DNA from: Pocillopora damicornis
Taxonomy: Eukaryota
Reading direction: 5' to 3'
Assembly (NCBI RefSeq): GCF_003704095.1
Contig: NW_020844494.1
Span: 124,001-188,000 of the forward strand
DNA length: 64,000 bases
Shown piece by piece: positions 8,638 to 55,325 of this stretch. Below the pieces are notes generated by a model. The model was not told the DNA's origin and searched no databases. It worked only from the letters and a program-made list of their open reading frames with translations. Both the position numbers and the translations under genes were made by a program. Positions within the stretch are counted from its first letter, which is position 1, and the number at the start of each line of letters is the position of its first letter.

Positions 8638-8846
8638 CTAATTAGGAGAGCAGAAGTAAAAGGGCAGGGACCTCCAGTCAGGGCAAAGAGCTGCTAGAAG
8701 GGTTAGTGATTCTTCAAGTTCTTTAAGCAAAACCTTTGTCTTTTATTTAACAAAGAAAATGTCCTGGGTATTCTTGGCCCCTGAAAAGTTTTTAAAACTT
8801 TTTTAAAACAGAGAAGCAAACATCATCACACAAAATGAAATCTTAC

Positions 8847-11800: not shown

Positions 11801-12706
11801 ATGAAAAGTATTCTTTATATACAAGTTTGACCTGCACCATCTAAAGTAATATCTAAAACAGGTGAGGGGGACACTCACTCATGACAAGTGGCCCAAGGGG
11901 TGTCAGAGTGTATCCCAGTTTCAACAGCACAAAGCCACTTACAGCATTGCTTTTCCTCTTGGGTGGGGTGCCAGTCCATTGTAAGCTACCCCCCTAACAA
12001 TTCCCTTGTACCCCTTTGCACTCCTAAGCGAAGAGAAGTATTGTGGGAGATATTAGAGTATCATCCAAGAACACAATACACTGACCTGGTAAGGTCTTGA
12101 ACTCAGAATTAAAATTGGGGATTCTAGTGCACCTAACGTTTGGTGGATGACAAAACCCTGGAATACCTTCAACAGGATCATATGTTGTGGAATCCACTCA
12201 AGCATTAATTTACTGCTGACAATTTGCTACATCATCTGAAATGTTGCTCAGTTCTTAAATCCAAAGTGGCACTACCCACACATTTATGTCCAATACACAA
12301 CCATACCTATGTCCATTTCCTGTAAGGTTTGTCTGGAATTGCCCGACGAAGAACTCCTTTCCATTGGAGACTTAATTTCACGGAGTAATTTTGAAGGCAC
12401 TCTCACTCTCTGAGTTCCATTGAAAGTCAGATCAAGAAGTGAAGATGAAGACTGGTCTTGTAACTCCCCACTAACAGAGTCAACAGCTCTGTCATTCGTT
12501 GCGGAATTAGCCCTAGTAACAGGCGGATTCATGGCTGAAACAGGTTGAGTTGCATCTTGTACATGTCGTTTGCGTGGAGGTGTGTAAGTCCCCTGTGGCA
12601 ATCCTCCTATTGTTTTAGCTTTTTTGTCCTTGTGGAAGTCTTGAACGCTCGACAACGCATTTACAGCAGCGCCTGTCAGTGAGAGTATCTGTCTCGAATG
12701 CTCCAT
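8847..12706 (-). CDS. KIAA0586: TALPID3 / KIAA0586 homolog, 5' seven coding exons (~484 aa); 3' part lost in gap 8538-8637
   Basis: Phase-consistent GT-AG exons 12706-12307, 11722-11448, 10840-10762, 10620-10551, 10062-9897, 9781-9602, 9129-8847. The peptide DVKIKRFVLNDKEKSLKEQFLKR...VATAAAIAAAAASAATGPFLQLQHTLEAQISALVNNLQVLQ plus coiled coil resembles my recollection of the vertebrate TALPID3 block ([25 protein letters not shown]). Nearby TIMM9 supports the call. Confidence 0.78.
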
Positions 12707-13069
12707 TTTACAGAAAATCATAAACAAACTCGTCTTTCCGTTGCATACTCCTCAGACTTGTCAATAGTTCACAGCTAAAGTGAGACATCAATAAAATTTT
12801 CCTTCCTCTCTTCCATCCTCCAAATTATAAATTAAATCATTCATGAGAAATAGGTATTTTCCCAAGGTGATCACCTCCCGAAATGTTGTAAAATACCTCC
12901 TTTCACACCGAATGAGTAGACTTCAAATCCCCGCCATTTTTAAATTTGCAAAGATCTAGTGCCAGCGCTAAAAAATTCCTAGCACAGCGGTCTAGTAAAA
13001 ATAAGGAGCGGCTGCTAAGGTTATAGTTGCGTCGTCAGCAATTTGTAAACAATCTTACCTCAATCGAAC
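12707..13069. promoter_or_regulatory. Bidirectional promoter between TALPID3 (-) and UVSSA (+)
   Basis: The start codons are about 363 bp apart, head-to-head. A YY1-like CCGCCATTTT lies at 12931-12940 and CpGs are locally retained. Confidence 0.65.
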
Positions 13070-15474
13070 ATGGAGGTCACAGCCGAACTTTCTCTTCTAG
13101 AAGAACTGGGCGAAATTATTGGAACTCTTACCACTTCTGGTAGTCCATCGTTGAACAGTGATCTCCTGAAGAAGCTAAAGAACATATGTAAGAAATCTGA
13201 TGTTTACGTCAAACACGCTTACCACTTGATTCTGACACAGCTGAAGAAGAACCACGCAGAAATACGACTTTCATCATTTCAGATCATCAATGAGCTCTTT
13301 TTTCGTTCCCATGCTTTCAGAGAAATGTTGCTGATTGATTTCCAGATCTTCTTGGAACTTACATTAGAAACAGACTACAAGCAACTTTTGCCACCACCTG
13401 CATCTGCCGCAAAAATTTTGAAGGAGAAAGCCTTGGAGGCCATAGATAGCTGGCATCGGAAATTTGGATCTCATTACAAGAAACTAGATTTAGGTTACAG
13501 CTATTTAAAAAGGGTTAAAAACGTTGAGTTAAGTGATCACTTAGCTCGAAGTCAAGCTGAAAGTCGCCAAGTAGAGGATAGGGAAAGACGGAAAAGGAAT
13601 ATCATTAATGGACAGATTATTCGTGTTGAAAATGAGATGTCGGAGATGATCAGCGAAATGGAATTGTGTGCTACTGAAATAGAGAATTGTTTTAAGCTTT
13701 TGTTACCTCACCCAGATGAATATGAGGTTCACTGCACCAGGGAATCTGCCTTATCTGAGCTTGAACAGATTGCTGATACAGATGTTAACAAAAGTCAGGA
13801 TGGTACAGAGGTCACCAAGAATTTAATTGGAAACCAAACACCAGACAGTATGGAAGAAGACAAAATCACTGACAAAAGTCAGGAAAATGATCCTAAAGTG
13901 GATACTGATGAGGAGCTGGTGACTGATCATGGACTGGGAACAAGGTCATATCAGCTGACCATCAGATTAGACAAGACTGGACCAGAAATAAGAGAAACAT
14001 CTGACAACAGCATTGTGTTAAACACAGCTCGGGAGTTTTACAAAGAATTGACTCATAAACACTTACCCATGATCAACAAGTGGATTTCTGTGTTGAACAA
14101 AGGTGAAGGAACACAACAGAAAATTCAAGAACTTATTGATCTTAAGGAGACTTTAGATAATGCAAAAACTAAATTCCTTGAGTTGAAAATAACACCTCTT
14201 CCTGACACCAAAAATAGTCAAAGTGCTTCAACAGAGAGTAGCAGTGATGAAGAAGATGACATTGAAGATTTTGAAGATGTTCCAGAAAGGGAGGACATTG
14301 AATTTCTGGTTTCTCCGGGCCAAACAGCTGGAAAGGGTTCAAAACCACCAACTAGCACTCACAAGACATTCACTGGTAAATAATTGACATTAGATATGTT
14401 TTGTAAAGAAACCAAAAAATTTATTGATTGTGATGATGTCTGTTCTTGTGATAACAATGCCCCAGGATAGCTTTTTTTTCAACAGCTCTGTGGAATTAAA
14501 CCACTGTTCTTTTCTTTAAGGGCTCTACTGGAGGTTTGGCTAAAACACATGGGTTGCTGAGTGTAATTATCTCTTCTTTTTCTACAGAATCAAGTTCCAA
14601 AATATCTCAAAAGAATAAAGCTAGCTTACTGAAGAAGTTTGGTGCTAATCTTCGGGAACTGGGTGATCCCACTTCTCGTGCTACTGCTTTGTTTAAAGTG
14701 AGGGACAAACTATCAAACACTGATTCTTTGTCAGTTCCTGATAAAAGTTCTAAGGAACCAGTAGATGAAAGGAAACAGAGGTTACTTGAAAAAGCACCAG
14801 TTGTGCCATTTGACATGGATCTCTATTTCTGGGAAGACCCAACCGCTGAGTCGCACAAGGTTGTCAAAATGTATCTTGATAACAACTGGGCATCTAAGGA
14901 GCATGAAGGTGAATATCTTGTTGGTGATGAGAAAGAGGCCAGACCAACACGAATGGTCACATTTGCAGGTAGCTTTGAACCTGTCAAGTGGTCTTGCCGT
15001 GCACCTTTACCAAGTGGTAAACTTTGTCCCAGACACGATAGAGTGAAATGTCCTCTTCATGGCAAAATTATACCACGGGATGAAACTGGTAGCCCTGTGA
15101 TTCATGACAACACCACATCTGATGCCGCCTTTGAAACTTCAGAAAGAAAAAGCACCAGTGTTAATGCTGAAGAAGATAAAGGTTCGCCTGCAGTGGACTG
15201 GAAAGAGATTCAACTTGAGGTCGAAGCAGCTACTGGCTTGGACTTGGGAGGCAAAAAGAAACGAAAACGTAAAAGTCACTCGAAAGCAAATGGCAAAAAG
15301 GAGTCTGGTCTGACTGATATTAAAAAGCAAAAGAATACAGTAAGAAATCGTTTAGGAAAGATTGTGTTGAATAAGAAAGCTATGCGACGTGTGGCAGATC
15401 AAATGGATGCTATTGCAACAAAAAGATGTGAGGACAAATTTGCTAATCAATTTAATTATTCCTTGAGAAAGTAG
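13070..15474 (+). CDS. UVSSA: UV-stimulated scaffold protein A, 2 exons
   Basis: Exons 13070-14375 and 14588-15474 are joined by a phase-1 intron (G|AA = Glu). N-terminal VHS-like LTTSGSPSL..LKNICK..HAEIRLSSFQIINELFFRSHAFR, DUF2043 zinc motif CRAPLPSGKLCPRHDRVKCPLHGKIIPRD and C-terminal KFANQFNYSL are present. Confidence 0.95.
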
Positions 15475-15926
15475 CATGACTTGTCTTGAAAGAAAAGCCT
15501 AAGAAGACCTTACACATAATGCCTGATTTTCACTGGTTTCTAAAGCAAAGCAGTACATGAGAGACTTGTCTGTTAGACTCAACTTAAAAATTATTGCAGA
15601 AGGTTGCAAAAGACCTTATCCATTAATGCTGTTGATTTTGACACTCAAAGCATAAAATTTCAATTTTTTTTAATTTGTCCTGACTATCAAAGGTTTCAAA
15701 TGAAGAATAGTTGATGATGCATGAAGGACCTTTCTGTTTAACTCAGCTTAGAGATGACTGAAGAATTGTTTTTGTCATCAATCAAAAATTGTGCTCTACA
15801 AAAATGATTTTGATCAGTTTTATTATGTAATTATATACAACATATAAATATTAACTTACACTGTAGTTAGGGGATGATCAGATAATGTAACAGTGACAGT
15901 ATGAAAGAAGGAAAAGCAGTTAAGTG

Positions 15927-16138
15927 TCAACCCTTTAACTCCCATGAGTGACCAAGACAGAATTTCTTCTTACAATATCAATATAATATCAACCAGATAA
16001 GCGATGAGAATAAAGAAAAATATCAGTCAAGGGATTATAAGTTGATCCAAAACCAAATTCTGAAAACTAACATCACAAGAACTGTATGGCAGATAGTAAG
16101 GAGAATTACTAATGAAATCTTAGGAGTTAAAGGGTTAA
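15927..16138. mobile_element. MITE-like element with terminal inverted repeats (aaccctttaactcc...ggagttaaagggtt)
   Basis: About 210 bp with TIRs and TTAA-like ends. A full inverted copy is at 22819-23030; partial or diverged copies at about 18915-19018, 20895-20986, 39260-39416, 45845-46050 and 47860-47955. Confidence 0.75.
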
Positions 16139-36091: not shown

Positions 36092-39000
36092 ATGTTGTCA
36101 GCTGCTGTACTGTTGGCACTGGTGACTGTATCTGTGGCTTCTGAAGGTAAAATGACTTGTTTTCTGAAGAAACGTGTTATCTCTTGCTAAAGTTTAAGAG
36201 TCTACTTGAGGGGACCATTTTTGAAAGACTTGAAAATTTATTTCTTGTTTATTTTAATGTAATTGATCATTGAAAGTCGCCACCCTTTAAAAACACTCTT
36301 GGAAACAATGGGGGAAAATACCCCTCGTAGAAGCAAGATGAGAAAAGGCACGAATAGGTCACTGATTGATCCCTTTAGCTGTCTTTGAAACTAGAAAATA
36401 CTTGTTCTCGTTTTTTTTCAATTTTCATTTCATCAAATGAGATGTGTTCATCCAGTTGTATGACTTTGGTGTGAGTGAAAGTGCATCCTGACAATGACTG
36501 CTGTGAACAGCAACACCGTTGCCTGGATACATTTCAACGATACTTGCAATGTTTGATGCTCACTTGAAGTGTCATCTCTTTTTTCTAATTTATCTCGCGA
36601 TACTCGTAAAATTTAAAGCCTTTCTTTCATCCAGACGTCGAACAAGAAACTGGTACCAGCAATTTTGAAAGGCAACCCCATCAAAACGATCAAGGCAACC
36701 TGTAATGGCATGGCACTCTGTTCAAGGGGGGTCAAAACTTTTCACCCTGAGGAAAGCCACAATCAAGAAACCCACCAACTTGTTCCTCGAATGAATGTTG
36801 AGAAGAGGGTAAAGCTGGAGTTTCTGATCTAAAAGTCTCCAATCATCATAAGACCTTCTCTAGCTGGGGAAAACTTAAGAAATTCTCGTTTTAAACCCTT
36901 TGAATCCAGCTTGATCTTAATTAGCTTAAAAAGAAGCGACTTTCTGCGGCGTGATTGTATCTGATGACATATGTTTCATTCCTTCTTCATCTCAACAGGA
37001 GCAAAGTGGAAGTACGGGGAAACAGACCGTCACGGTACAGACAACAGAGTCTTGAAGTATAGATTAACAATTCATTTGCTGTATGCTGGTTTATTCCAGA
37101 TATTCAAGATTTTTCGCATGCTTTAAAACTATTGTAAATAAATCTCGTACCCAGATTCTACCGAGTAATTAACTGAAATGTATCCGCTCGGCCGTGGAAT
37201 GTCTGGGTACGAGACTATAATACTACTCATACAAACAAATGAAAACATAGTATTTACTTTGTGCTCAAAAATCTATTTAATATAATCCCTTATTTTCCTA
37301 TTAACGCTGATATTCCTAACAGGTTATGGTCCACCTGACTGGGGTAAAGTTTCAAAATACTGCGATTACACCGCCCAGTCCCCCATAAATATCGAGACTC
37401 CGGTTAAGAAAGATGCAAGTCTCAAGGGACTCAGAATTACAACCAAGAATAGAAATGGAAGGGTCAGCGGAGACATAAAAAACAATGGTCATGCGCCTAC
37501 CCTAACTATTGACAAAGGCAAGGCTAGACTCACCGGGGGTCCCCTTGGAGATAGCGTGTATATGCTCCAGCAGTTCCACTTTCATTTCGGTTGTGATTAC
37601 GACGAAGGATCAGAACACCTCGTGAACGGAAAGGCATATCCTGGAGAGGTACGCAATGGTAGCTCTTGTTTTCCATACGTAATCACGGCGGGAGGCGTCA
37701 GCACTACGACCACTAACTGAAAGCACCCGTGACAAATTGTTCCTCTGCTACAGGTGCATAAGGACTAGTCATCATTGATCACCTCACCTGGGGAGAGAGT
37801 GACGGTTTTTATTGTTGGAGGATGGATTACATGGTTTTCAGGGGTAACGGAGGGGGAATTAGTCGTCGTTAAAAAATCGACCGCCATTAACCGCCAATGA
37901 GGGGGAAATATAGACATATTCACAGAGCCTTCGGAGGGGTCGACAAATTTAATTATGACCCAATCAAAATCCTCCAGCTCCCATCCCCCCTCAACTCCAT
38001 ACCATCCCCCCTCCACCCCCTCCCATCCCCCCTCAGGCGATAACGACCGGTCTCTTAAGTCGTTCCGTCAGTCTCTAATTTTGAGATTGGATTTCTTACT
38101 GCAATTTAATTAAGTCAAGTCAGTCAAAGCAAGATGACATTTACTAATCACAATCGAGGAAAATATCTAATCTCGTGTCCAGGTTCTACCGTTAAGTGCT
38201 TGTCCGTGGAAGGTCTGGGTACAAGACCTGAAAATGTCACTGGCTATGAAGCAAACTGTGTGAAGCGTGGAATACGCGAGTGGCTATTAATCTTGTATGG
38301 CTCTAGTTTGGCATCTGGTCGGCAGATCAGCGAGGAACTATTTACAATATTGTACTTCATGTATAATTTTAATTTATCGTCTTGTAGCTCCATTTGGTGA
38401 CTTATAACACAAAGTACGCTGATTTTGATACCGCTGCGTCCCAATCCGATGGACTGGCTGTGATTGGCGTTTTCTTTGAGGTATGTCTGGAAATATCATA
38501 CATGTTGCTATATTAACTTTACCAGGTATTTTGTTAGTGATGAATTTGGAAAAAAAGAAAATTTTTCCTGGAATAGCAACTGTTCCTAAAATGAAAGGAA
38601 TCAGCCGCATGGTGGAATCGGTAAGGGTTGGGGAAGACTGGGGTAGAGAGGTAAAGTTGAAGTTGAAGTCATCGCAATTGAGGAAATTGAAAATTGGATT
38701 GATTGAAGAAAAATGTACATCAACAGCTTTTCTTTAGTGAGATCATTTGCATACCTGTAAAAAATACCTCGTACAGTTGCAAGGGATTTATTTCTGCTCC
38801 ACGACAAACATTAGAGTTGGCAACGCTCGACATTAGTGCACTAGTATACTTCATACAGCACATTGTACAAAAGGCAGCAACAAGGGTCAGATTTCAATGG
38901 TTAGGGAACTAACGCTAAGTATTGGCTTGGGAGATGGAGTGAATCATTCTAAGAGGAACATCTTTCAGTTAAAAACTTCTAAGACGATGATATCTTTAAT

Positions 39001-40162
39001 GTGAAAACATGCTTCCTGTTTCAGGAAACGAAGAAAAGAGAAAAAGGGAAAGGAAAAAAGCACTATACCATCCGCAAACTTTACTCAGCTCTGAAAAAAA
39101 TAAAGGACGTTGGTGAGGCTTTAGCAACTTACATCATCTTATATATCCACTTATAAATCCGTTTGTCTCGCGCCGTAGAGCCTGTTAATTCAAGAGTAAA
39201 GCTATCAATCAGAGATAAAGATGTTTCCACTGCTCTACTTTCTTTTCTCCCAAGACCATCCATAGATTTTCAAGCAGAAGTTTCATGAAGTAACACAACA
39301 TCAACGGAAGGGTATTTTTTTATTTGAAACTAGATTTTCAGAACCAAAATTAAACGAAATGTATGGCAGACAGTGTCGAGAATTTATACATAGATATTGG
39401 AAGCAAAAAGGTTAAACATTTATAACATCAGGGCAGCTAATACAATCACTTTCTCTCCCAGGTGCCGAAGCTTCAGTCAAAAACATAGCGCTGCTCGACT
39501 TGGTTCCAGAACTGAAAGATCTCTCATCGTTCTACTCCTACAAGGGTTCCCTTACCACCCCTCCCTGTTATCAATCAGTTAACTGGATTGTACTGAAAGA
39601 ACCCATCAAACTCCGTAGTTTTGTGGTAAGAACATTTTTATGCTATTTTTCTGCTTGTTAACATTTAAACACTATTTAAGTGCCTGAAAAATTAGCACTT
39701 ACGCGTTTCACATATCGCCTACTAAAGCATTCAAACGCACTAGAGTCCAATTTTAGACACTAGTGTCTGAATTAAGAAACTTGTGTCCGATTTTAGATTT
39801 TAGACACAAGTGTCCGTTATTAGATTCTAGTGTCCCATTTTAGATATTAGTGTCTGGTTTTTCAGATTTTATACACTAATGTCCGATTTTAGGACGATAA
39901 GCAGCACCTGACGTGTCTAAATTGGACCCTTTTTTCTTTCGTGATGCTACTGACACTTGTGTTTAAAGTTATCTATACCCAAAAAGTCCCCAGCCTTCTA
40001 TAACTTTTGTTTTTTCCGATCTTCTATCCACAGTTAATGTGATTTTTTTTTCAGTTCGGCGCCATGAGGAGACTGAAAAACGGAGAGGGAGGCCTTATGT
40101 GTGGAAACTTCAGACCACCTCAGAAACTCAACGGACGTGTTGTTTCTGAACTCGACGGATGA
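36092..40162 (+). CDS. Secreted alpha-carbonic anhydrase, paralog A (complete)
   Basis: Exons 36092-36146 (signal peptide [18 protein letters not shown]), possible 36635-36652, 36999-37034, 37323-37648, 38388-38480, 39025-39112, 39462-39625 and 40055-40162. Motifs [51 protein letters not shown] and [11 protein letters not shown] are present, with all three Zn-ligand His intact. Confidence 0.93.
39750..39895. repeat. Degenerate ~20-bp tandem repeat (ttttagacactagtgtccga) in CA intron; counterpart at 46380-46540
   Basis: Repeated self-complementary core gacac(t/a)agtgtc. Confidence 0.7.
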
Positions 40163-41916
40163 GCCCAAGAATCAACTTGCAACTACTTAACACTATAGTA
40201 GCTAATTTACATCCTGCAAGAGAATATAAACTCTTATAATCGCCTAGATACTCTTAGCTAGATTGTGACGTATTCTGGGGGTTTCTTTCTTAAGCAAGGA
40301 TTGTTAGCGACATCCAAATAAATTGCATTTATCGGATTTGTTTGACTATTACTGTTTATTCAAAAGAAAATTATTTAAATCGCCAAGAAAATTATGATGG
40401 TAGACTTAATGACTCTTTAAAAGAAAGGAACATTTATCACAAATCTCTACCGAATGGGGATCAGTTCCTTAGAGCAAGATACCGTATCCCAAAGACATTT
40501 CAGTCATAATGATAATAAACGTTGTGAATAATTTATTATTATTGTTCATATGGTTCCATTTCTTAAAAAAAAAAACGAACAAAACAAGATATTCTTAGTC
40601 CAGGAAGAAATTATTATGAAACCCGATGAAATGGCAAAGAGATATTTTGCGTTTATCGTGATTTGGAAGTAAAAACCTTCTTCCTTCTGAAGAAAGAATG
40701 GAATGCTTGCCTTTCTACACGAGCTTCAAAACAGTTAAGGTTTTAAGGATCTGGATCTGGAAAAGTTCATCATCCTTAAAATCATAACTCTTTAGTGTCA
40801 CCTCTTTCGTCTATACTTATATGCTAACTTACCGTAGAGAAAAAAATTACTTTGACACAAGAGTGAACTTTGACAAGATACCTTCGTGAAACGGTTTTAG
40901 ACTTGCTTCGTTTGGTTCAGTTTCATCGGTCTAAAAATTGTTTGTTTGACCATGATTTTATCTTGAGTGAGTGTTTAAAAATTAAAGAAAATACCATTAG
41001 ACAAATCTTAGATTTCTTTGTTTGGAGAAGAACTCTGTCTTTTTTAGTCAATCGAAAACAGCTGATGCAAAAAAGGAAAGTGATCTATGTCATTCTGAGA
41101 TTCTGAAAAAAAACAAGCAGCAAATTGATAGTTACTTTGTAAAAATTAGATTATTATTCTTTGATTAATTCACAATTCGTTTCGGCAATTTTGTAGTTTA
41201 CTTACTTGATAAAGTTTCTTATCAGCCTTGATTAAGCGGTTGTTCAGTCGTTTCAGATTGATTTAAGACTATAGCTGTAATTTAACCAATATATCGAAAA
41301 AATCATGCCTCACTGTAAAAACACAAAACCTCTGATTTGACAATTTTTTAGCATCCTGGCTCTCATCCCATTTATTTCTTCTCCAAGTTGAAAGCTGGCG
41401 CTCGATTTTAGAGTTTAGATTTAAAACTCTCAAAGCTCTAGTCCCTTTGATTATTCCTTTGTCACCACCTACTCTGTAAGAAGAAAAATTTGATCTTGAA
41501 ATGAAATTTGGCTATAAAATACGCGACTATGACAAAAATTCGTTCAAACAAGAAATTTATTTGATCGTGATTGTTATCTGTGAAGCACAAGTAGGGATAA
41601 AGTTTGATATCATTAAAAGATCCTCTCTGCAAAATTATTCGACGGCTTAAAGTCCCTGAAATTAACGCACGACTCCTTAGTAGCTGTCGGTCAAATATTT
41701 TCCCAGGCTGAACATGCTCATGATGCTACTTGTTCCAAACCTCTGACTATAATCTTGACAAAATGCTTTCAGGAAGCAAATGCCTTATTTCAAGCTGTAA
41801 CCCACATTGATGAGTCNNNNNNNNNNNNNNNNNNNNNNNNNNNNNNNNNNNNNNNNNNNNNNNNNNNNNNNNNNNNNNNNNNNNNNNNNNNNNNNNNNNN
41901 NNNNNNNNNNNNNNNN

Positions 41917-43552
41917 ATGCTGGCTGGCTGCACTGTTCTGGCTTTGCTGTCTGCACAGGGTGTTCTTGCTTGTCCGATTCCTCCATTTCAATGGTTACGA
42001 GCTCAACAAATTTCTTCATGTGAGCTACATTACGCATTTCGTTGTTGCCATTGGCGTCTCGTACGAGAACAGCATTTCCATCCTTGTGAGTGACAACAGA
42101 CGGATCTAGCTCGTAATTAGGCGGGAGCTTGTCGTCTAGCGTCTGCTTCAATAACACTTTGTCTTCTGCTTTAATGTCACTGTATTTAGCTGCTCGTGTC
42201 TTGTCCGCATATTCTTTTTGTCGAAGTTTCGCACGTGCATCTCTTTCTCTTAGCTGCTGCTGCTAATATGGCTCTGTTGCTCGCTCTTTGTAGAATTCAA
42301 CTTGAGGAAGTTTGTCTCGCAGTTTCCTCCCCATAAGCAGTTCTGCAGGGGACATTCCAGTAACAGTGTATGGAGTAACTCTGTACTGAAACGGAAAGTC
42401 CTGAAGGGCCTTCCGCCAGTCTCTCGCTTCAAGTCGGGAAATCCGCACAATTTTCAAAAGGGTCTCATTGCAACGTTCCACTTCTCCATTGCTTTGCGGC
42501 CAGTACGGTACACCCTTCTTGTGTTCAATCCCCAGATATTCCAAGAAGGCTTCAAACTCTTTCACTCCGAATGGGGGTCCATTATCGCTACGGACGGTTC
42601 CTGGTAATCCATGTGTTCTGAAGATAGCTTCCATAGACTTAATCACGTGTTGAGCATCTGTTTTCTTCAGAAGGATAGCTTCCATCCAACGGGAACGGTA
42701 ATCCACCACTACCAGGAGGTGCTCGCCATCTGATATGTCAAGGAGATCGATTGAAATATCTTGCCACGGTCCCTCAGGCAGTTTTATCGATCTCACAGGT
42801 TCTGGTTTGGCTCTTGGTCCTACAAGCTGGCTGGGATAACAAGCTAGTATCAACTCTTCCACCTGCTTATAAATCCATTTGAGGCCATCACACTTTCTCT
42901 CGCAATCTGGCCTTGGTTCTGACCATTCCCTGGTGACCTTCATGAGCCAGCACAATGATTTGCTTCCAAAGGTTCTCAGGCATCTTAATACGATTTCTCC
43001 TCATCACAGTTTGTCCTATCAGCCACAGCTCATCTTGTACTGCTTTGTAAATGGTTCCTGACAATCGGTTCCAGTCACCGGTGATAATGGCCTGGCGCAC
43101 TAGCTGCAAGGTTGGGTCATTTTCTAAGGCAATCACTACTTGCTTTGGTACTAATGCAGCCGGCACAGCTTCTCTTGCAACGCTGTGTGCAAATCTTTCG
43201 TGCTTTCATCTTGGGTCTGGCCAACAGAGAGACAGCTGAGAACATCTGCTGCATTATCTTTTCCCCTAATGTGAGTCAACTCGTACTGGTACTGCTGCAA
43301 ATAAAGGAGCCACCTCTGTGTTCGGGCTGATGGAGGTTTGGACTTTGGGCTGAGGACTATCACTAAGGGTTTGTGATCTGTACAGATCTCGAACTTAATC
43401 CCATATGGGTACAGGTGGAACTTCTCGCAAGCCCAACTGACGGCTAAGGCTTCTCTTTCAAACTGTGAGTATCGTTTTTCAACCTTACTGAGTTTGCGAC
43501 TGGCGTAATAGATAGGCCTGTAACTCCCATCCTCTTGCTCTTGTTCAAGTAT
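41917..43552 (-). mobile_element. Degenerate Ty3/Gypsy LTR-retrotransposon pol fragment (RNase H - integrase)
   Basis: RNase H YASRKLSKVEKRYSQFEREALA..TDHKPL, integrase zinc finger AHEGHQGMVRTKARLR and core IDLL..VVDYRSRW..SDNGPPF..PQSNGEVER. It is broken by frameshifts and stops and flanked by gaps, so LTRs are not visible. Confidence 0.92.
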
Positions 43553-43652
43553 NNNNNNNNNNNNNNNNNNNNNNNNNNNNNNNNNNNNNNNNNNNNNNNN
43601 NNNNNNNNNNNNNNNNNNNNNNNNNNNNNNNNNNNNNNNNNNNNNNNNNNNN

Positions 43653-46600
43653 CACCGGGGGTCCCCTTGGATATAGCGTGTTTATGCTCCAGCAGTTCCA
43701 CTTTCATTTCGGTTGTGATTACGACGCGGGATCAGAACACCTTGTGAACGGAAAGCCATATCCTGGAGAGGTGCGCAATAGTAGCTCTCGAAACTTTTTG
43801 TTTTCCATACGTTAGCATTACGACCACTAACTGAAAACATTCGTGACAAATTGTTCCTCTCTCTCACAGGTGCTTAGGGACTAGTCATTATATATTGATC
43901 ACCTCACCTAGGGAAGGAGTGAAGGTTTTTTTGTTGGAGGATGGATTACATGGTTTTCAGGGGAAACGGAGGGGGGAATTAGGNNNNNNNNNNNNNNNNN
44001 NNNNNNNNNNNNNNNNNNNNNNNNNNNNNNNNNNNNNNNNNNNNNNNNNNNNNNNNNNNNNNNNNNNNNNNNNNNNNNNNNNNNNNNNNNNNNNNNNNNN
44101 NNNNNNNNNNNNNNNNNNNNNNNNNNNNNNNNNNNNNNNNNNNNNNNNNNNNNNNNNNNNNNNNNNNNNNNNNNNNNNNNNNNNNNNNNNNNNNNNNNNN
44201 NNNNNNNNNNNNNNNNNNNNNNNNNNNNNNNNNNNNNNNNNNNNNNNNNNNNNNNNNNNNNNNNNNNNNNNNNNNNNNNNNNNNNNNNNNNNNNNNNNNN
44301 NNNNNNNNNNNNNNNNNNNNNNNNNNNNNNNNNNNNNNNNNNNNNNNNNNNNNNNNNNNNNNNNNTCAATTTGATTGAGTACCGTCAGTCAAAGCAAGAT
44401 GACATTTACCAATCACAACAGAGGAAAATATCTAATATCGTGCCCGAGTCTATCACCGTTTAGTGCTTATCCGTGGAAGGTCTGGGTACAACACTTGAAA
44501 ATATGACTGGCTATGAAGCAAACTGTGTGAAGCGTGGAAAACGCGAGTGGCTATTAATCGTGTATGGCTCTAGTCTGGTATCTGGTCGGCAGATCAGAGA
44601 GGAACTATTTACAATATTGTACTTCATGTATAATTTCAATTTATCGTCTTTTAGCTCCATTTGGTGACTTATAACACAAAGTACGCTGATTTTGATACCG
44701 CTGCGTCCCAATCCGATGGACTGGCTGTGATTGGCGTTTTCTTTGAGGTATGTATGGAAATATCATATATGTTGCTATATTAACTTTACCAGGTATTTTG
44801 TTAGTGATGAATTTGGAAAAATAAAAAATTTTTCCTGGAATAGCATCTGTTCCTAAAATGAAAGGAATCAGCCGCATGGTGGAATAGGTAAGGGTTGGGG
44901 AAGACTGGGGTAGAGAGGTAAAGTTGAAGTTGAAGTCATCGCAATTGAGGAAATTGAAAATTGGATTGATTGAAGAAAAATGTACAGCAACAGCTTTTCT
45001 TCAGTGAGATCATTTGCATACCTATAAAAAATACCCCGTACAGTTGCAAGGGATTCATTCCCGCTCCACAACAAACATTATAGTTGGTAACGCTTGACGT
45101 TGGCGCGCAAGTAAGACTTCATACTGCATATTGTACAAAAGGCAGCAACAAGGGTCAGATTTCAATAGTTAGGGGACTAACGCTAAATATTTGCTTGGGA
45201 GATGAAGTTCATCACTCCAAGAGGAACATCTTTCAGTTAAAAACTTCTAAGACGATGAGATCTTTAATGTGAAAACATGCTACCTATTTCAGGAAAAGAA
45301 GAAAGGAGAAAAAGGGAAAGGAAAAAAGCACTATTATGCCCTCCTCAAACTTTACTATGCTCTGAGAAGAATAAGGGATTTTGGTAAGGCCTTAGCAGCT
45401 TGTATCATTTTATATATCCGCTTACATATTCGTTTGTGTCACGCCAAAGAGTCTCTATAAATTCAATGGTCAAGGTATCAATTAGAGATAACGAAGTTTC
45501 CACTGTTCTACTGTTAGTCTTCGTCACGTGATGAGGTTCAATGATTGCGCGTCGCTATAAAGGGATAGTTAGCTGCTATTGGTGCGTTTTGGCGATATCT
45601 TATTAGGGCATTTTGATCCTCGTTGCATTTCGACAAGTAGATGTTGGTTCCTCGCAGGAGTTCTAATGTTGTCATTTCATTGCCCACTGTGCGGGTATCG
45701 TGCAAGGAATAAAAACAAAAAAGTTTTAAATAACAATACCCTATACGAAACATAACTTAAATACGAAGATCGTTAACACGACGATATCTTGAGAATATCC
45801 TTCTCCCATCACGGATCCAGAGTGTCCACACTACTCAGCCAAACTCATTACTCCTAATAGTGACCAAAAGAGAATTTCTCCCTAGAACATCCATAGATTT
45901 TCAAGCAGAAGTTTCATGAGAAGTAACACAACATCAACGGAAGGGTATTTTTTGATTTGAAAGTAAATTTTCAGAACCAAAACTAAACGAAATGTATGGC
46001 AGACAGTGTCGAGTATTTATACCTAGATATTGGAAGCGAAAAGGTTAACCATTTATAACATTAGGGCAGCTAATACAACCACTTTCTCTCTCAGGTGCCG
46101 AAGCTTCAGTCAGATACATAGCACTGCTCGACTTGGTTCCTGAACTGAAAGACCTCTCATCGTTCTACTCCTACAAGGGTTCCCTTACCACCCCTCCCTG
46201 TTATCAATCAGTTCGCTGGATTGTACTGAAAGAACCCATTAAATTCCCTGGTCCTTTGGTAAGAATATTTTTATGCTATTTTTCTGCTTTTTAACATTTA
46301 AACACTATTTAAGATCCTGAAAAATTAGTGCTTGCGCGTTTCACATATCCTACTAAAGCATTCAAACGCACTAAAGTCCAATTTAAGACAAGAGTGTCCG
46401 AAATCGGAAATTTGCGTTCGATTTTAGATTTTAGACACAAGTGTCCGATTTAAGACACAAGTGTCCGTTACTAGACACTAGTGTTCTATTTTAGATACCA
46501 GTGTCTGATTTTATATTTTAGACATAAGTGTTCGATTTTAGGACGATAAGCAGTACCTGACGTGTCTAAATTGGACCCTTTTTCCTTTGTGAAAGTTATG

Positions 46601-46833
46601 CTATTAACAGTTCACAGAGCACAAACGTTTGCGTTTAAAGTTATCTATACCTAAACAGTCCCCAACCCTCTGTAACTGTAGTTTTTTCCGATCTTCTATT
46701 CACAATTAATGTGATTTTTTTCCAGTTCGGCGCCATGAGGAGATTGAAAAACGGAGAGGGAGGCCCCATGTGTGGGAACTTCAGACCACCTCAGAAACTC
46801 AACGGACGTGTGGTTTCTGAATTCGACGGATGA
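43653..46833 (+). CDS. Alpha-carbonic anhydrase, paralog B (5' exons missing in gaps)
   Basis: Exons (gap)-43770, 44655-44747, 45293-45383, 46095-46258 and 46726-46833 form an open frame with intact [18 protein letters not shown]; close copy of paralog A. Confidence 0.9.
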
Positions 46834-47996
46834 GCTCAAGAATCAACTCGCAATAGCTTAACACTACAGTAGTTGATTTAGATTCTCCAAGAGAATATAA
46901 ACAGTTTATAATCTCCTAGATACTCTTAGCTAGATTGAGTGACGTATTTTGGAGGTTTCTTTCTTAAGCGAGGATTGTTTGTAACAACGAAATAAACTGC
47001 ATTTATCGGATATGTTTGACTATTACTGTTTATTCAAAAGGAAATGAGTCAAATCCCCGCGAAAATTATGATAGTAGACTTAATTATTCTTGAAAAGAAA
47101 GAAATATTTGTCATGAATCTCCATCGAATGGGGATTCCCCACAGTAAGGCACCGTATCCCAAAGACATCTCAGTGGTAATGACGACGGATAGAAACGAGC
47201 GAAGCGTTTTGCTTTAAACTTGATCACCTTTCCTTGTTCCTCTGTTAAGAAATTGACAAACCATACCCTTTTGTTCACACCAGTGGCAACTTTCTTACCT
47301 TCCTTTGCAACTCAGCTCTTTTTATTCTCACCGCTGAGTTCACATATACCTCTTTCGTGAAATAAGTATTCTTTAGGGACAACCCTGAAAACCCTTTTAC
47401 GGTGTGCGAAACCTCACGAACGAAATGCTGAGCGGGGGGGACAAAACTCACAGACACTTTTGGTGGAGAGAGTTTGGATAAGCTTTAGCACCGCTGGCTA
47501 TAACTGCTAACTTTTCCCTTTTTAACCCTCTTCCTCGAGAGTCAGNNNNNNNNNNNNNNNNNNNNNNNNNNNNNNNNNNNNNNNNNNNNNNNNNNNNNNN
47601 NNNNNNNNNNNNNNNNNNNNNNNNNNNNNNNNNNNNNNNNNNNNNACAGAAACAATATAATCTCATTCCCTGTATACAAGACAGTAACATTTGGTATTCA
47701 TACAAACCCTAGTACGGAAATATCTTCTTCTGTTTGACTTCGAGAACATAGGAAATCGTGAATGATACATCGGTGAAATACGTTATCATCTGTTCATCAT
47801 TTTATGTCTAACACAGTAATTATCAGATTATGGTAAAATGTTGAATAAAGGAAATGTTCGCTTATGATTATTAAACAAATTCTCCCTGTCATTAACATAT
47901 GAAATGTGTTGAGTTGAGTATGGAGAATATGCATACTGATGTTAGAGTGTAAAGGATTCTAGTTCTTCATGGGAAGTTACTTTATCCGTGTCTTAC

Positions 47997-50202
47997 CAGC
48001 CTTCCTTATGTATCGCGTTGCTCCACTTATAATTTTTAACGAATAACTTGAGTCATCCTCATCATCTCCCTTCGATTCAAAACAAAAAACCGTCGCTGGG
48101 TCAAAACTGTGTCGAAATATCTATAAGACCTGCTGGTACGGTAACCAGCTGCTGTTCGGGAAATGGGCTTATGCTCCTCCCCTGAAGTCACTCTACTCGG
48201 GAGAATCGAAAACCGAACTCGAAAGTGAGGCGGAAATCAAGTTGAGTAACTATAATAACGGTGTGAAATCGAATCTTGAAAGTTTTAAACGTGTTTTTAT
48301 CTCGATCAGACAGAGTCTCCATGTTCATGATGTAGTATTCATATTTTCCGCTCAGACCTTACTATCGTTTTATTATACAAGTTAAAGAATGGTAAGGTGC
48401 AGTTGTTAAAATAAAGAACAACACTGTTCACAGAAATTGGTGTTCAGTGGATGATTGCTGAGAAACTAAACTACATTTGATTCCCGAAGACCGGGCCATG
48501 GTTGTTAAATATGACTCGTTGACTCGTTAGAAAACCAAGGGCGTAGCTGGNNNNNNNNNNNNNNNNNNNACTAAGTAAAACACTGTGTGGAGAAGGACAT
48601 GAAAATCTGCTGAGTACCCTCTGTTTAACGAAGTGTGAACTCCCCCTTGGAAAAATTCTGGTTACGCCCCTGCCGACGGATTTGTCTGTTGACTATGCAC
48701 TTCGTTCAAAAGCATTCCAACCTTTTTGAGTGGACGGACCAATAAAGAAATCCCATCGATTTATTTAGTCAGCGTGTGTGAACACAAAACAAAAGTAGAG
48801 CTCAATAAGAAAAATTGAAACATAAATTGCAGCACTTCTGTTTTCACCGTTGATTTTTGCTGGCTTTCCTCACCATTCATCAGCGCTAGGTTGACTTGAA
48901 ACAAAATGATAACATCTTTTTTACCTGTAAAAAGACACCAATCACAGCCAGTCCGTCTCGTTTGTCCACAGCAGTTTTAAAATCTCCATACTTCGTGTTA
49001 TAGTGCACCAAATGAAGCTGAAAAGGAAAAGCATGTTTTACCATTTACCTTGAACTTAAACAACAAAGATGTTCAACTATAAAATACTTATACTTTTAGG
49101 AAAACTGAGTATTTGGCAACTCACACTAAAACTGTGATCTCGTTCGGATATGGACAGAAATTTTCTCGTTTCGTTGCTTTATAGATATCGTTCGCAAAGG
49201 CAACCTTTTTTATACAGGCTCGCTACATAAATTCGATCATCTCCTTATTGCCCCTCCAGATAATGCTCTAATCACTAATTGTGTCCCATTACCTCTCCTG
49301 AGAATGCCTTTCCGTTGACAGTGTGTTCAGATCCTTTGTTGTTCTTACAACCAAAATGAATGTGCAACTGCTGAAGCTTATACACGCTGTTCCCCAAGGG
49401 ACCTCCGGTGAGTGTTGAAGTACCCCTTGGTTTATCTATTGCCAGGGTAGGAGCATGACCATTGTTCTCTAGAACACCGCTGACTCTTCCATACCGATTC
49501 TCAGCTAAAAACCGGAGTGCCTTCAGACTTCCGTCATTTTCCACCGAGCGGGTTTCAATATTTATTGGGGACTGGGCGCTCCCGTCACAAAACTTTGAAA
49601 CCTTTCCCCAGTCTTTCGGACCATAGATTTTATGGACTTTGTCTGCGTATAAAATTAAATACATGTTTGCAAAGACTCGTGATCACTTTATGTTTAGATG
49701 AAAAGATAATTGCCATTAATACGTTTTGCGAATTTCAAGTTCAATTCTTAACATTACAGTTCAGTTGAGTATTCTAAATTTATTATTAATAACATATCCA
49801 CATATATCTATATATCAAGTCAGTAAAAAACTCCAAGGACGTCTTTTAAAAGAAGCAACTCATAATACCTGTTTCACCATATTTCCACTTGGTCCCTGGG
49901 AAGTAGAAAAGAAAGGAAAAATAAATTATTGTTTCTGTCTTTTGAGTATTTACGCGCACAAGTTAAAGTTAAGTTATCCCTAACATTTTTATATTCCACT
50001 CGTAGAAAGAAAAACTAAACACCAAAGCATAAGTTTTGTACAAGTGTAATTTAATTTAATTTATTCAAAAGATAGATTTAATTTCTGCAATTCTCTAATG
50101 CTAGCAAATAGTTGTTAAACAATCCTAAGCCCATATGAGCATCATACCTTGTGCGGTCAGGGCTGAACCCACGAGAACAGATAATATAACGATTTGGAAC
50201 AT
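47997..50202 (-). CDS. Secreted alpha-carbonic anhydrase, paralog C (last two exons not seen, probably in gap 47546-47645)
   Basis: Exons 50202-50148 ([18 protein letters not shown]), 49895-49869, 49642-49293 (QSPINI, NNGH, QLHIHFG, GSEH), 49017-48925 (LHLVHYN..DGLAVIG) and 48069-47997. Confidence 0.9.
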
Positions 50203-52626
50203 TGTGTTTTGCGTCTGTAAATAGGAACAAATCGGTAAGTAGTTAAAACATTCTCAAAGATATACCTTCAATCAACTTTGCATCACTCAACCATCCCGGT
50301 AACGTTAACCTTAGCCTCTCAAGATTTGCCCACCGAAATTGGTGAACTGGATTGATAAAACACGGAGGAGTGAGGAGAAGCAGCAAAATGCAATTCAATG
50401 TTTGTTTGTTTGTTTTTTCATTGGAACGATCGTCCCAACAGGAATTAAAGAAAATATTTCACCTTAAACTGATCAAAAAGTGATGGTTTTCACTTCAGAA
50501 TGAGTATAAAATGAAAAAAGTTAAGCAAAAGTACGTCTACAGCATGTACTTTTTTCTCGAACTGAATTTCTTTAATTAGTATTCGAGGCCTTAATCTCAT
50601 ATGGCAGGGAGCAAATTGGAGTATTCTAGCACGGTTGGTGGAAAGACTGCAACATTAGTTAGACAGATGTGTTGGGTAGGAATTTACAGCACTTGTAAAG
50701 TTGGTCTTCAAGTTTGCAGGTGAAAAAGCTACGCAGAGTAAATATTTATTCTCAGAAAATGAGATGCTCGACATTTCTCGTGAGTTTATTTTGCGTGTTT
50801 GACCAGAGTTTTACCTACCTGCGTAAATTCATGGATGGTAATGTTTTGGTAGTGACAAATATCACACATTTTCCGTCTTGTCTCTCTATTATTTTTTCTC
50901 ACTTAATTTTAAAATCGTTACCAAAGGAAGCGTTTTTTTATTGTAAGAAAGCAAGTTTTGATTTTACTGTATGACTCATCTGGAACTAGCGTTATTAACT
51001 TAGTTCTATTATGCAATGTTGAAATAAAATCAAACCATTGAATTGTGTACCTTTGCTCAGCTTGAGCTCAGGGAGGATTTTCATGACTAACAGAAAACTG
51101 GAAAGTAATTTTCCTTTCTAAAGAGCGACACTGGCGACCGCTAACCAATCGAATTCCACAGGAAAAATCCTGCAGGAAAGATTTTACACCAAACAACTCA
51201 GATATCGCTGATGGCAACAGAATTTCATTGTTGTCATTCACGTCATTATATAACCATGTATACCAAAATACTTTGAATTTTGTACAAAGCTGCTAAGTCC
51301 AATATGATCTGGTGACAGTGATGATATTGATGATTCCTTGATTCTCTAAGCCAGTGAAGGTCATCGATAAAATTTGAATGAAAAAAANNNNNNNNNNNNN
51401 NNNNNNNNNNNNNNNNNNNNNNNNNNNNNNNNNNNNNNNNNNNNNNNNNNNNNNNNNNNNNNNNNNNNNNNNNNNNNNNNNNNNNNNTCAGATGTCTACA
51501 GACGTCAATCTGGCTACACTGTTTCAGAAGCTTTATCTAACTAGAAAAAGATACGCAACACAATAAGTTTGCAGCTCCGTAAACCCCAGCGTAGAATTTG
51601 GCCAATCTTTGACAAACTTGTTAGCAGAACGTTTGCTTAGATCTCAAGATCGTAGGCCGAAGGAAATGTGAATTATCAGGTTGAGCATTTTTATCAACTT
51701 TCAGGCTAGAAGTGGGTGAGGTTTTAAAAAAATCTCGGAGTGCGCCTGACGCGGCACAAACCAACCTAGGGAAAAACCTTATAAAAATTGGTTATATCAT
51801 TTTCTTGTATCAAATGGAAAACAGCACCAACTTTGGTAGTGGTGAAAATTTTCCAGCAGCCATGAAAATGTCAGCAAGCCGTCAGATAATATGATCTTAT
51901 GAAGGTTTGTAACTGAAAATGGACTAAATTAAGAGAAAATACATGGGTTCGAAAAAAAAAGCCACGGTCAACATACCCAACTCACAAGCATGCAAAACGA
52001 CCTTAATCAGAGGAATCAGTAGCAAATAATGATCTCCGTGTTAGAATCAAAATCATCAGGGAGTATAGGCCTTACTCAGTGTGTAACACTTTAATCGAGG
52101 TCGCATTTAGTCCCCAAAATAACACACGTACAACCTTATGGTATAGCTAACTCTCTGATAATCGCAAAAGAGAGCGAGATAGCGTTTAAAGGCGTCGACT
52201 CCCTCTCGTACAAACTCAATACACCTCCTTACGACTCACCGGAATCCACTGGTGAACCCAGGATACCGAGAATATTTTCCTGCCAATTCCAGAGAAAAAA
52301 CCATAAAGAAACGCAGAGGACAGGCTTGGTAATTTAGGACTCTTAGTGTGATTTTTACCAATATAACGCAAAGATAATATAAGGATCACAAAAAGTAATG
52401 GCAAATGATTCATATAAAGCCCAAAAGGTTACACGGTCGTTTCAGCTTAGTGTTATGGTGAAAGCCCGCTTTTTATTAACTTTTCTGACTTTTTTTGCAA
52501 CCTTCGGTGAACTACCATTTAATTAAGATAGATATTTGCTAAAAAGGAAACGAGTTCAAATTATGATACGGCTTTCTATTGGTAATCGTATAGACCTCGT
52601 TATGTCTTAGTGACACTATTGGATCG

Positions 52627-55325
52627 TCAATGGTAAAAGGGGACATTCAGCAGGCCAGACAGCTTTTCCTTTCCAGGCCACGTGAAAATCTTGCGGCCAT
52701 TCAGCGGTTTCACAGGCCTGAAGTTGTTGCACAGAGGGTCGTCGCTAATAGTGGATAACGATCGCAGTAATTCCAGCTGAAAAGAAATTGCTAGATTGCA
52801 TTAATATGCTAAAAATTGGAAAATAAATACATGGTTTTTACACCTCTTTGTATAAAATCCGTCTGAGCAGTGGCATCAACACCAAATTTTCTCGGCTTGA
52901 GCGGTAACTATATTCTCTTACCTACGGCGCTACGCTGTGCGCACTCTAAGCACTGCGAGCTCCGCTACTAACCTGGGATTCGGTGATCGGTATTGGGTTC
53001 TTCATTACGATCCATTGCACGGATTCGTAGCAGGGAGGGGTGGTAAGGGAACCTTTGTACGTGTAGTAAGGAGCGCTTTTTGACATCAAGTCTGGAACAA
53101 GCTGTGTCAGCGGTATACCGCCATCAAGACTGTAGCTGTCACCTTCAAAAAACACAACAAGCTGAAATTCGTACCAGTCTCACTAGAAGTAAGGGCGTAA
53201 TCGCAAATGACACAAGTGTATGTTTAATTACCATTGGGAGTTACGACATTGGTTGAGGCCAGAGCAATTTTCTCCATCCATTTGTTGAATCCTCCGTTCA
53301 CCTTCGAAAAAAAATAAGAACGAAAAGGTAATCGGTTAACTTCTGGGTGGAGACGAATCTGTTGGAAGCGTCTCCGCTTGCAAAAGTAATGACGATATGC
53401 AATATGAATTCCGTAATCTGTCAATTTATCCACCAAAGCCTCAAAGGGTCAAAAGTTAAACAAATTAATAAGTATGGTTAAGAAAAACACAACACAAAAA
53501 CTACCTGCAGAAACACTCCGATAACCACCAACCCATCGGGCTTGGAGACGGCGTCCTTGAAATTTCCATAGATGTCATTATAAAACACCAAGTGCATCTG
53601 CCAGAGGAAACGCAAGTAAAAAGCACTAGAGTATCTCATTCGTAAACTCTGTGTCTGAACAGGCAAGGGCCAATTCGACGAAAACAACAAAACGAGGCCT
53701 CAGCAAATGTTTTACTGTAATGTGTCAGAAAAAAGTAAATTCCTACGAAGCGCAAAAAATAGCAATTACTACCAGACAAACTACCTAAAAACCACTGCAA
53801 CCGAAATTAAAGAAAACGATGAAAATGAAGCTGCTCACCAAATGCTGAAGATACCTAGGGTTGGTGATTGGGAAAACCGAGTAAGGGAAAAATCTACTTC
53901 TACCAACACTATTTCACGGTTAGGCACAAAAAACTCTGGTAAAAAGAAAGGGGCGAGATAACAAACTATATAACTAAATTACTAAATTTACATACAGCAC
54001 GTAACAAAAGAGTGTAATTAACAAAATACCGAAGAGCAAAAAAGTATACGATAACAAGTAAGTGACGAAACGAAAAAGAAAATGAAAAATTTCCCCAACA
54101 GTATCGTTCTTCAGTTGGAAAGAACTAACGTCAATAGAAATTCACACTAGTGGACTATCATTTTGATTGTATGCTGGACAGCCTTCGCGAGAGTGTATAA
54201 GTCTCAAGGGAAAAAAAACCTTTTTTCTCCTCTAGCTTAACAATCGTTCTTTTGAAGGAAGTCTTACAAGATTCATTCCTTTGCTTACTTATTGTAATTT
54301 TTTCATGTGGGTCCTTAATTCGTGCAGCTTTAGCATTAATTCATGTTAGATACCTCTGATGCAAAAGAGTTTCCATCCACGGTATGTTCAGAGCCAACAT
54401 TGCTTTCGCATCCAAAATGAAAGTAAAACTGTTCCAGACGAAAGGTGTTTTGACCAAGAGGACCTGCCGTGAGGGTTACACCGCCTTGGGTTTTATCCAG
54501 AGTAACTATAGGGGCGTGGCCATTGTTGGACAAGACACCACTCACTGTTCCATCCTCATTATCAAAGATCGGCACTAGGCCACCATAAGAAGAATTTGTC
54601 TGAGACAAACTAGTAACTATGTCGATGGGAGACTGGAACTGACCACTGCATGACGGCACCGCTAGACCCCAGTCTGCCGGACCGAACTCTAGAGAAAGTT
54701 TTGAAAGAAGACAGTGAATGTGTTGATGGGCAACGAAGGACTAAGCTATGAGACTCAAACTGGCATCTAGAAGTTTTTGCGAATGTATTGATTTCTGTGT
54801 GTTGTCTCATCACTCAGCTATTGAAAGTTAATGGAGAAAAAGGACGACAACTGGGCATAACGAAGCATAATTTGAATCATACCTGTTTCTTCGTATCCCC
54901 ACCGGCGTCCTCCTAGTAAAAAAAAAAAATTAGAGATCGATAGAAACGTTTTAGAGTTTAGATCATTTTAAACTGATCTTGAATTACATCTCTTCGCCAT
55001 CTCTGCATTTTCACCCAGGGCTGCCAAATTCAAGCGACAAAAACAAAAAAAATTGACGTCCCAATGTGCAGATTGTCTCGATGGTATACTTCATGGGCTC
55101 TTACTCAGATAAGGTCAAGGAATCAGTTGTTCTTAGTTTGATTTAATATGAATGCGAGACAAGAATTGCTGTGACTTACTTACTTACTTGTGTTGCAAGG
55201 GAAATTCTCACTGGTTTTAGTTGTTTGATTTCGGATCATAAATGTGAGGAAGTAGAGATCTTACCTTGGTCAGCAAACGCGTTGTTGAAAATTGCCACCA
55301 AAACAACAACAAACAGGCATCCCAT
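52627..55325 (-). CDS. Secreted alpha-carbonic anhydrase-like protein, paralog D (complete; first Zn-ligand His replaced by Tyr)
   Basis: Exons 55325-55265 ([20 protein letters not shown]), 54912-54883, 54688-54354, 53597-53505, 53301-53232, 53142-52973 and 52776-52627. Motifs [36 protein letters not shown] and [11 protein letters not shown]. Confidence 0.92.

Follow-up and report, generated by a model that had tools for sequence, protein, structure and literature searches.

Paralog-specific charge of a predicted surface loop in a cluster of genes for putatively secreted carbonic anhydrases of Pocillopora damicornis

Coral carbonic anhydrases (CAs) work in the calcifying medium, the gastric cavity, the mucus and the space around the symbionts. 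A stretch of 64,000 nucleotides (nt) from the coral Pocillopora damicornis (assembly GCF_003704095.1, contig NW_020844494.1, positions 124,001 to 188,000, forward strand; hereafter the window, in whose coordinates all positions are given) carries four neighbouring genes, A to D, which are tandem paralogs encoding apparently secreted alpha-carbonic-anhydrase-type proteins and whose homologous fifth exons open with peptides of different charge. Does this difference bear on where the proteins act? An initial annotation of this DNA had called the exon a charge switch and proposed that it serves as an address tag, partitioning one enzyme among extracellular compartments. We found that the charge contrast is confirmed and is more than chance. 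The reading that we tentatively favour is that each paralog maintains its own electrostatic patch, away from the catalytic centre, and that this patch may alter the extracellular interactions of the protein. By best match and cluster look-up, A and B correspond to Stylophora pistillata alpha-CA 8 (SpiCA8), C to alpha-CA 12 (SpiCA12) and D to alpha-CA 9 (SpiCA9), and the orthologs of the two genera are 81-94% identical in the large exon.

The variable exon is the fifth of seven in this cluster; it follows a 93-nt exon 4, starts in phase 0 and ends in phase 1. The exon coordinates and peptides given in the initial annotation for A to D proved exact, with an AG acceptor and a GT donor at each:

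39025-39112, plus strand: exon 5 of gene A, 88 nt, AG acceptor and GT donor; loop codons 1-13 at 39025-39063, then a basic helix.
45293-45383, plus strand: exon 5 of gene B, 91 nt, AG acceptor and GT donor; loop codons at 45293-45331.
47997-48069, minus strand: exon 5 of gene C, 73 nt, AG acceptor and GT donor; loop codons at 48046-48069, then a basic helix.
53232-53301, minus strand: exon 5 of gene D, 70 nt, AG acceptor and GT donor; loop codons at 53284-53301.

Counting net charge as the sum of Lys and Arg minus the sum of Asp and Glu, we obtained +5 over the 13 residues of the Lys/Gly/Glu loop of A, +5 over 13 in B, -5 over 8 in C and 0 over 6 in D. Across the whole exon the values are +9, +8, -1 and +1, respectively. 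The acidic form that had been ascribed to C therefore holds for its loop and not for its exon as a whole: a -5 loop beside a +4 helix makes exon 5 of C a dipole, rather than simply acidic, within a basic protein with an isoelectric point (pI) of about 9. For whole proteins, the pI is 9.3-9.4 for mature A and SpiCA8, 9.0 for SpiCA12 and 5.0 for D, and SpiCA12 has a net charge of +13 without its loop and -6 in the loop itself. As calculated, then, the C-type acidic loop is opposite in sign both to its own protein and to the adjoining basic helix. Eight other secreted CA paralogs of the same genome have an exon of 61-79 nt at this place and loops of 7-10 residues with charges of only -2 to +1, which makes A/B and C the extremes.

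To place the exon in the fold, we used alignments and structure models; these, like our searches, employed database proteins that are identical or orthologous to the gene models (P0271, P0289, P0262, P0163 and P0282). The AlphaFold2 models of the Pocillopora verrucosa A-type protein and of SpiCA12 have a mean predicted local distance difference test score (pLDDT) of 90-91. In the A-type model a strand is followed by a loop (residues 174-182) and a helix (183-198), and in SpiCA12 a loop (177-183) precedes a helix (184-193), with a local pLDDT of 85-97 in both. Among solved structures, human CA II matches best (E ~1e-47), and exon 5 aligns to its residues ~150-167, the loop to ~150-155; relative to CA II, the A type carries a 9-residue insertion here, outside the catalytic motifs. 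No zinc ligand, gatekeeper or proton-shuttle residue falls within exon 5 in this alignment. The models and the alignment thus support the earlier account of this segment as a surface loop and helix. From the known CA II fold, we take this region to lie roughly 25 Å from the zinc.

The three loop charge states recur in Stylophora, in homologous DNA and behind the same acceptors, and the loop of D is identical in SpiCA9, so that the loop charges have been kept between the two genera, and among Pocillopora alleles and species the A-type loop stays strongly Lys/Arg-rich. Between Pocillopora and Stylophora, the ratio of nonsynonymous to synonymous differences per site (pN/pS) in exon 5 is 0.16 for C, 0.07 for D and 0.53 for A (pS ~0.25-0.35), and other exons with more than 20 aligned codons gave 0.12-0.38. 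For C and D these values are equal to or below those of their other long exons; for A, 0.53 is the highest value in the gene and yet below 1. Judged from these substitutions, exon 5 of C and D is under purifying selection, and that of A is more relaxed, with its charge retained.

The electrostatic-patch reading can be set out as follows. Each paralog would have fixed its own loop state before the split of Pocillopora and Stylophora and kept it since. The SpiCA8 type carries a 13-residue Lys-rich loop, encoded by a polypurine tract, atop an already basic helix and protein; the SpiCA12 type, a run of Asp immediately adjoining a basic helix in a basic protein; and the SpiCA9 type, a short uncharged loop in an acidic protein. 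Such patches would leave catalysis unchanged and alter which extracellular partners each secreted protein sticks to. The basic form might bind polyanionic glycans or acidic matrix, and the acidic form might bind cations or basic partners, or else mask its own adjoining basic helix. Precedents are ACE95141.1 (STPCA-2), the one CA in the main-text tables of a Stylophora skeletal-proteome paper, in which a loop close by carries an acidic insertion of ~30 residues, and the mollusc nacrein-like CAs with their D/E or Gly-X-Asn insertions.

The three zinc-binding His residues (94, 96 and 119 in CA II) are present in A, B and C. In D, a Tyr encoded in the exon at 54354-54688 replaces the first of them (position 94), and both remaining ligands are retained, as are the gatekeepers; lacking this His, D is classed as a CA-related protein (CARP) rather than an enzyme. 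Its ortholog SpiCA9 is described as an inactive CARP in tandem with SpiCA12 (PMC4981384, in the passages on these genes). Gatekeepers Glu106 and Thr199 and the proton shuttle His64 are conserved in the A-type protein aligned to CA II, and these positions are invariant or nearly so in a 50-sequence alignment. The idea of one enzyme partitioned among compartments does not survive these comparisons: the A/B and C paralogs are only ~56% identical, and D, already published as a CARP, has lost one zinc ligand. We also observed that exons 3-7 of D have pN/pS values of 0.07-0.29 against Stylophora; purifying selection on these exons indicates that the inactive protein is maintained.

One alternative is that loop charge tunes the enzyme, adjusting solubility, stability, pH optimum or proton-transfer electrostatics to each compartment, and has no part in its destination. 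The overall pI values, far apart at ~9.4 for A, ~9.0 for SpiCA12 and ~5.0 for D, would fit such tuning, as would the course of the exon 5 helix, which presumably leads into the CA II 170 region near the active-site rim. However, exon 5 contains no catalytic residue, and D, which cannot bind zinc normally, has the loop under the strongest constraint. We therefore regard tuning as unlikely.

We next consider whether the charged segment is present in transcripts, by comparing contigs from four RNA runs, one per study, with positions 44600-50599. Runs X1, X5 and X17 contain the joints of B (44747 to 45293, 45383 to 46095 and 46258 to 46726) and of C (49293 to 49017 and 48925 to 48069, plus two upstream introns), and one X1 contig matches B without mismatch, indicating that B itself is expressed. 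Contigs of complementary DNA (cDNA) length from many runs encode A-type and D-type proteins, loop included. No skipping of exon 5 was seen in the RNA contigs, whose sole variants were intron-retention contigs. Use of alternative acceptors that drop the charged segment had been named in advance as an observation that would count against a role for it. Since the RNA contigs use the predicted acceptors and donors in B and C, and the cDNA-length contigs encode A and D exactly, the segment is kept and this objection fails. The same contigs dispose of a switch exon or mutually exclusive cassette: each gene has a single exon 5, used constitutively, so the variation lies between paralogous genes and does not arise by splicing. 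A non-canonical joint of low depth (45334 to 46094) occurred in X17 only and looks like an artefact.

The transcripts also bear on an explanation at the RNA level, in which the polypurine tract of A and B is an exonic splicing enhancer and the peptide of Lys, Glu, Gly and Arg its by-product. The first 30 nt of exon 5 are 97-100% purine in A and B (97% in A), compared with 52% in the other exons of A, and Stylophora DNA has kept this tract. Codons made up of purines alone specify Lys, Glu, Gly or Arg and no other residue. An all-purine tract thus codes almost exactly for the composition of the loop, which is why a splicing-enhancer origin deserves mention as a minor rival. Nevertheless, the acceptors of A and B already have good polypyrimidine tracts; the shorter exons of C and D, with 63% and 73% purine over their first 30 nt, are spliced correctly; and there are paralogs with exons of 61-67 nt that lack a purine tract. 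We consider this explanation quite improbable.

To trace the history of the loop, we searched 5.8 billion proteins with SpiCA8 and built a tree of 42 sequences from which the loop columns had been removed. The Lys-rich type was found only in Pocillopora and Stylophora. Its clade is sister to a scleractinian clade with mixed loops, which include Asp/Glu-rich ones in Desmophyllum, Oculina, Stylophora and several coral transcripts as well as neutral and mildly basic ones. The D clade keeps its short loop almost unchanged in eight coral sequences. A sister relation of SpiCA8 and SpiCA12, which would make the duplication local and specific to Pocilloporidae, was not rejected (approximately unbiased test, p-AU 0.47). 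These distributions indicate that the Lys-rich loop is confined to Pocilloporidae, and that Asp-rich loops are widespread among stony corals and change often. Throughout the family, the first codons of exon 5 are a hot spot at which small insertions and shifts of charge recur.

Three simple origins or roles for the charged segments were examined and set aside. A frameshift does not account for the change of charge, as the other two frames of 39025-39063 and 48046-48069 neither make the basic tract acidic nor the acidic one basic. Tandem Repeats Finder detected no array in the loop of A or C, and replication slippage was dropped as an origin. A proprotein-convertase site was considered because of a Lys-Arg pair in the A loop, and was dropped because the pair is missing from B and SpiCA8.

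Several observations weigh against a maintained patch. In exon 5, A and B differ by 10 nonsynonymous and 2 synonymous changes, a pN/pS of ~1.3 that is close to the neutral rate, and all of our substitution counts are small. The charge class of the loop changes at least 11 times among the 42 relatives, and in the SpiCA12-like clade the loops of certain corals are neutral or basic; this lability and these mixed loops fit a weakly constrained site. Actinostola, a non-calcifying anemone, has a CA with a poly-Asp insertion, so an acidic run is not a mark of calcifiers alone. The initial annotation had held that the same variation in non-calcifying relatives would speak against it; the poly-Asp run of the anemone lies in a different loop, and the Lys-rich loop occurs in Pocilloporidae only. 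In the main-text tables of a Stylophora skeletal-proteome paper, SpiCA8, SpiCA12 and SpiCA9 do not appear, and the only CA is ACE95141.1 (STPCA-2). Finally, a Cardin-Weintraub heparin-binding motif (XBBXBX or XBBBXXBX) matches once each in A, B and the P. verrucosa ortholog and is absent in SpiCA8; it is not conserved among the orthologs, and the charge density is high.

Much of this is what tolerated drift would produce. A permissive surface loop would gather indels and low-complexity runs, and the charges would be historical accidents of little or no function. Besides the repeated changes of charge class and the near-neutral divergence of A and B, drift is favoured by the range of loop lengths across corals (6-17 residues), by the restriction of the Lys-rich form to one coral family, and by the charged runs in other loops of other paralogs and of the anemone CA. 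By contrast, it does not predict the purifying selection on exon 5 of C and D between genera (0.16 and 0.07), nor the near invariance of the D-type loop in eight coral sequences. It also fits poorly with a net charge that is held, in the face of replacements, in A, B, Stylophora and the Pocillopora alleles. The 13-codon loops of A and B differ by two replacements with no shift in net charge, and their helices by three Lys-to-Arg changes. Drift is a serious rival, and we think it possible, if doubtful, that it is the whole explanation.

The electrostatic patch, which we continue to favour tentatively, could be part of something broader, in which the start of exon 5 is a modular electrostatic label in scleractinian secreted CAs and paralogs of opposite charge occupy separate extracellular niches or are paired. 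There would then be two active forms, one basic and one dipolar, and an acidic scaffold without activity, distributed, for example, between mucus or glycocalyx and calcifying matrix. We hold the label to be improbable on present evidence. Pairing in its specific form, as a heterodimer of the SpiCA8 and SpiCA12 types or of the basic active enzymes with acidic inactive D, is suggested by the geometry of opposite charges and the neighbouring genes and by nothing else; a model of the complex of mature SpiCA8 with mature SpiCA12 scored 0.00, which speaks neither for nor against binding, and we regard this form as very improbable indeed.

Three closely linked paralogs whose main surface difference is charge at one site, kept in two genera, offer a defined handle for loop-swap and localisation work. 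If the label were real, the partition of inorganic-carbon chemistry around coral tissue would be genetically dissectable through loop swaps.

The gene models behind these comparisons were built across the window from open frames, splice signals and orthologous proteins. A PF00194 profile search gave exon-wise matches above the curated cut-off in all four genes, and an alpha-carbonic-anhydrase profile search of the genome (234 Mb, 4393 contigs) found at least 20 more paralogs elsewhere. The annotated P. damicornis proteins RMX50025.1, XP_027038806.1 and RMX50023.1 match the window at 97-100% per exon. The models are as follows:

36092-40162, plus strand: gene A, complete, 7 exons, 289 residues, SpiCA8 ortholog; canonical GT..AG introns and an open frame; exons 36092-36146, 36999-37034, 37323-37648, 38388-38480, 39025-39112, 39462-39625 and 40055-40162.
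43654-46833, plus strand: gene B, 3' part only, from similarity to A, RNA joints and an open frame; assembled exons 43654-43770, 44655-44747, 45293-45383, 46095-46258 and 46726-46833.
47997-50202, minus strand: gene C, exons 1-5 only, SpiCA12 ortholog, RNA joints at all 4 introns; exons 50148-50202, 49869-49895, 49293-49642, 48925-49017 and 47997-48069.
52627-55325, minus strand: gene D, complete, 7 exons, 302 residues, SpiCA9 ortholog, translation equal to P0289 (pdam_00002836); exons 55265-55325, 54883-54912, 54354-54688, 53505-53597, 53232-53301, 52973-53142 and 52627-52776.

In all four genes the first exon is short, hydrophobic and signal-peptide-like, and a tiny exon comes next; this is consistent with the cluster being secreted, as the initial annotation had predicted. 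Models A and D have four Cys at the places expected for two-disulfide secreted alpha-CAs, and residues 1-17 of the AlphaFold2 models of the A-type P. verrucosa protein and SpiCA12 have a pLDDT below 50. A 984-nt Logan contig encodes a protein (P0271) identical to the product of A, which also equals residues 1-289 of the fused NCBI model P0265. A and B are 85-91% identical in nucleotides, introns counted, and by this measure are recent tandem duplicates. Their exon 4 (38388-38480 in A, 44655-44747 in B) is identical over 93 nt, whereas the flanking introns differ by ~9%; this could reflect local gene conversion or strong constraint, and the numbers are small. Between the two genes, the segment between two gaps at 41917-43552 has a raised G+C content (0.44), and a 230-residue open frame on the minus strand at 42263-42955 resembles a retroelement integrase core; the segment is probably a retrotransposon fragment. 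Intron 5 of C contains a segment at 47917-47955 (~40-60 nt) whose summed word depth is ~2,500-16,000 in the four RNA runs and on either side of which many RNA contigs part ways; it forms the core of a repeat dispersed through the genome, which has at least 291 candidate copies.

The cluster holds six assembly gaps, none of which (0 of 6) reaches the variable exon 5 or its splice sites:

41817-41916, no strand: intergenic, between A and the retroelement fragment.
43553-43652, no strand: covers exons 1 and 2 and ~209 nt of exon 3 of B.
43984-44365, no strand: within intron 3 of B.
47546-47645, no strand: candidate site of exons 6-7 of C.
48551-48569, no strand: within intron 4 of C; RNA contigs splice across it.
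51388-51487, no strand: intergenic, between C and D.

Similarity between A and B picks up at 43653, exactly the edge of a gap, and a B transcript contig reaches ~550 nt upstream of exon 6, beyond the length of the assembled exons. Because the 5' exons of B are lost in this gap, public P. damicornis models (XP_027038806.1, 479 residues; RMX50025.1, 459 residues) merge A and B over 36092-46833. For C, no CA-like frame is present in the assembled sequence of 46831-47996, and no complete model of the SpiCA12 ortholog is among the database matches. A C transcript contig goes on for ~374 nt beyond exon 5, and the continuation of a second C contig matched the paralogous exon 6 of B on the opposite strand. 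The gap at 47546-47645 probably hides exons 6-7 of C. With A and B merged in annotation and the 3' exons of the SpiCA12 ortholog lost to gaps, CA counts and expression values at this locus need care.

Elsewhere in the genome, two contigs (C3622 and C2888; loci L033-L036 and L044-L047) carry CA clusters orthologous to the STPCA-2 group, with an Asp/Glu-rich insertion of ~30 residues in the exon 6 loop. A third (C4317) carries SpiCA13/14-type genes, one of them with an in-frame stop in exon 4.

How does this locus compare with known systems? The closest is the Stylophora cluster of SpiCA8, SpiCA12 and SpiCA9, which Le Goff et al. (2016, PMC4981384) reported to lie on one contig and assigned to the secreted group with two disulfides. 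The genes are orthologs in the same order and orientation, SpiCA8 (+), SpiCA12 (-), SpiCA9 (-), and the difference is that Pocillopora has two copies of SpiCA8 where Stylophora has one. The passages of that paper on SpiCA8, SpiCA12 and SpiCA9 make no mention of a loop charge contrast. The accessions of these CAs were absent from the supplementary files of the Stylophora cell atlas that were examined, and in the literature searched no text cites the accessions or locus tags. STPCA-2/SpiCA2 (ACE95141.1), a skeleton-occluded coral alpha-CA known from skeletal proteomes, is likewise secreted and has a charged, low-complexity insertion in one of its surface loops, but this acidic insertion of ~30 residues lies in the next loop (exon 6 region), in another paralog group, and its exon 5 loop is short, with a charge of +1. 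The genes, their clustering and the presence of charged insertions in coral CAs were thus already known; the contrast specific to this loop appears to be undescribed in the literature searched and is a modest addition.

Mollusc nacrein and nacrein-like CAs are likewise secreted CA domains of calcifiers with Gly-X-Asn or Asp/Glu insertions, and these runs are thought to interact with carbonate mineral. Nacrein insertions are long repeat domains, whereas the coral loops have only 2-9 extra residues. A nacrein-like CA with an inserted repeat domain was therefore rejected for this cluster, in which the insertion relative to CA II does not exceed 9 residues and a search for tandem repeats came up empty. 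Human CA II has a loop at 150-155 and a helix at ~154-167 in the same alignment position and with the same loop-then-helix layout, and we take the exon sizes of vertebrate CA2 (93 nt for the preceding exon, then roughly 63 nt) to match those of the coral exons. By contrast with the coral proteins, CA II is cytosolic and its loop is short and weakly charged; the coral A type has 9 more residues.

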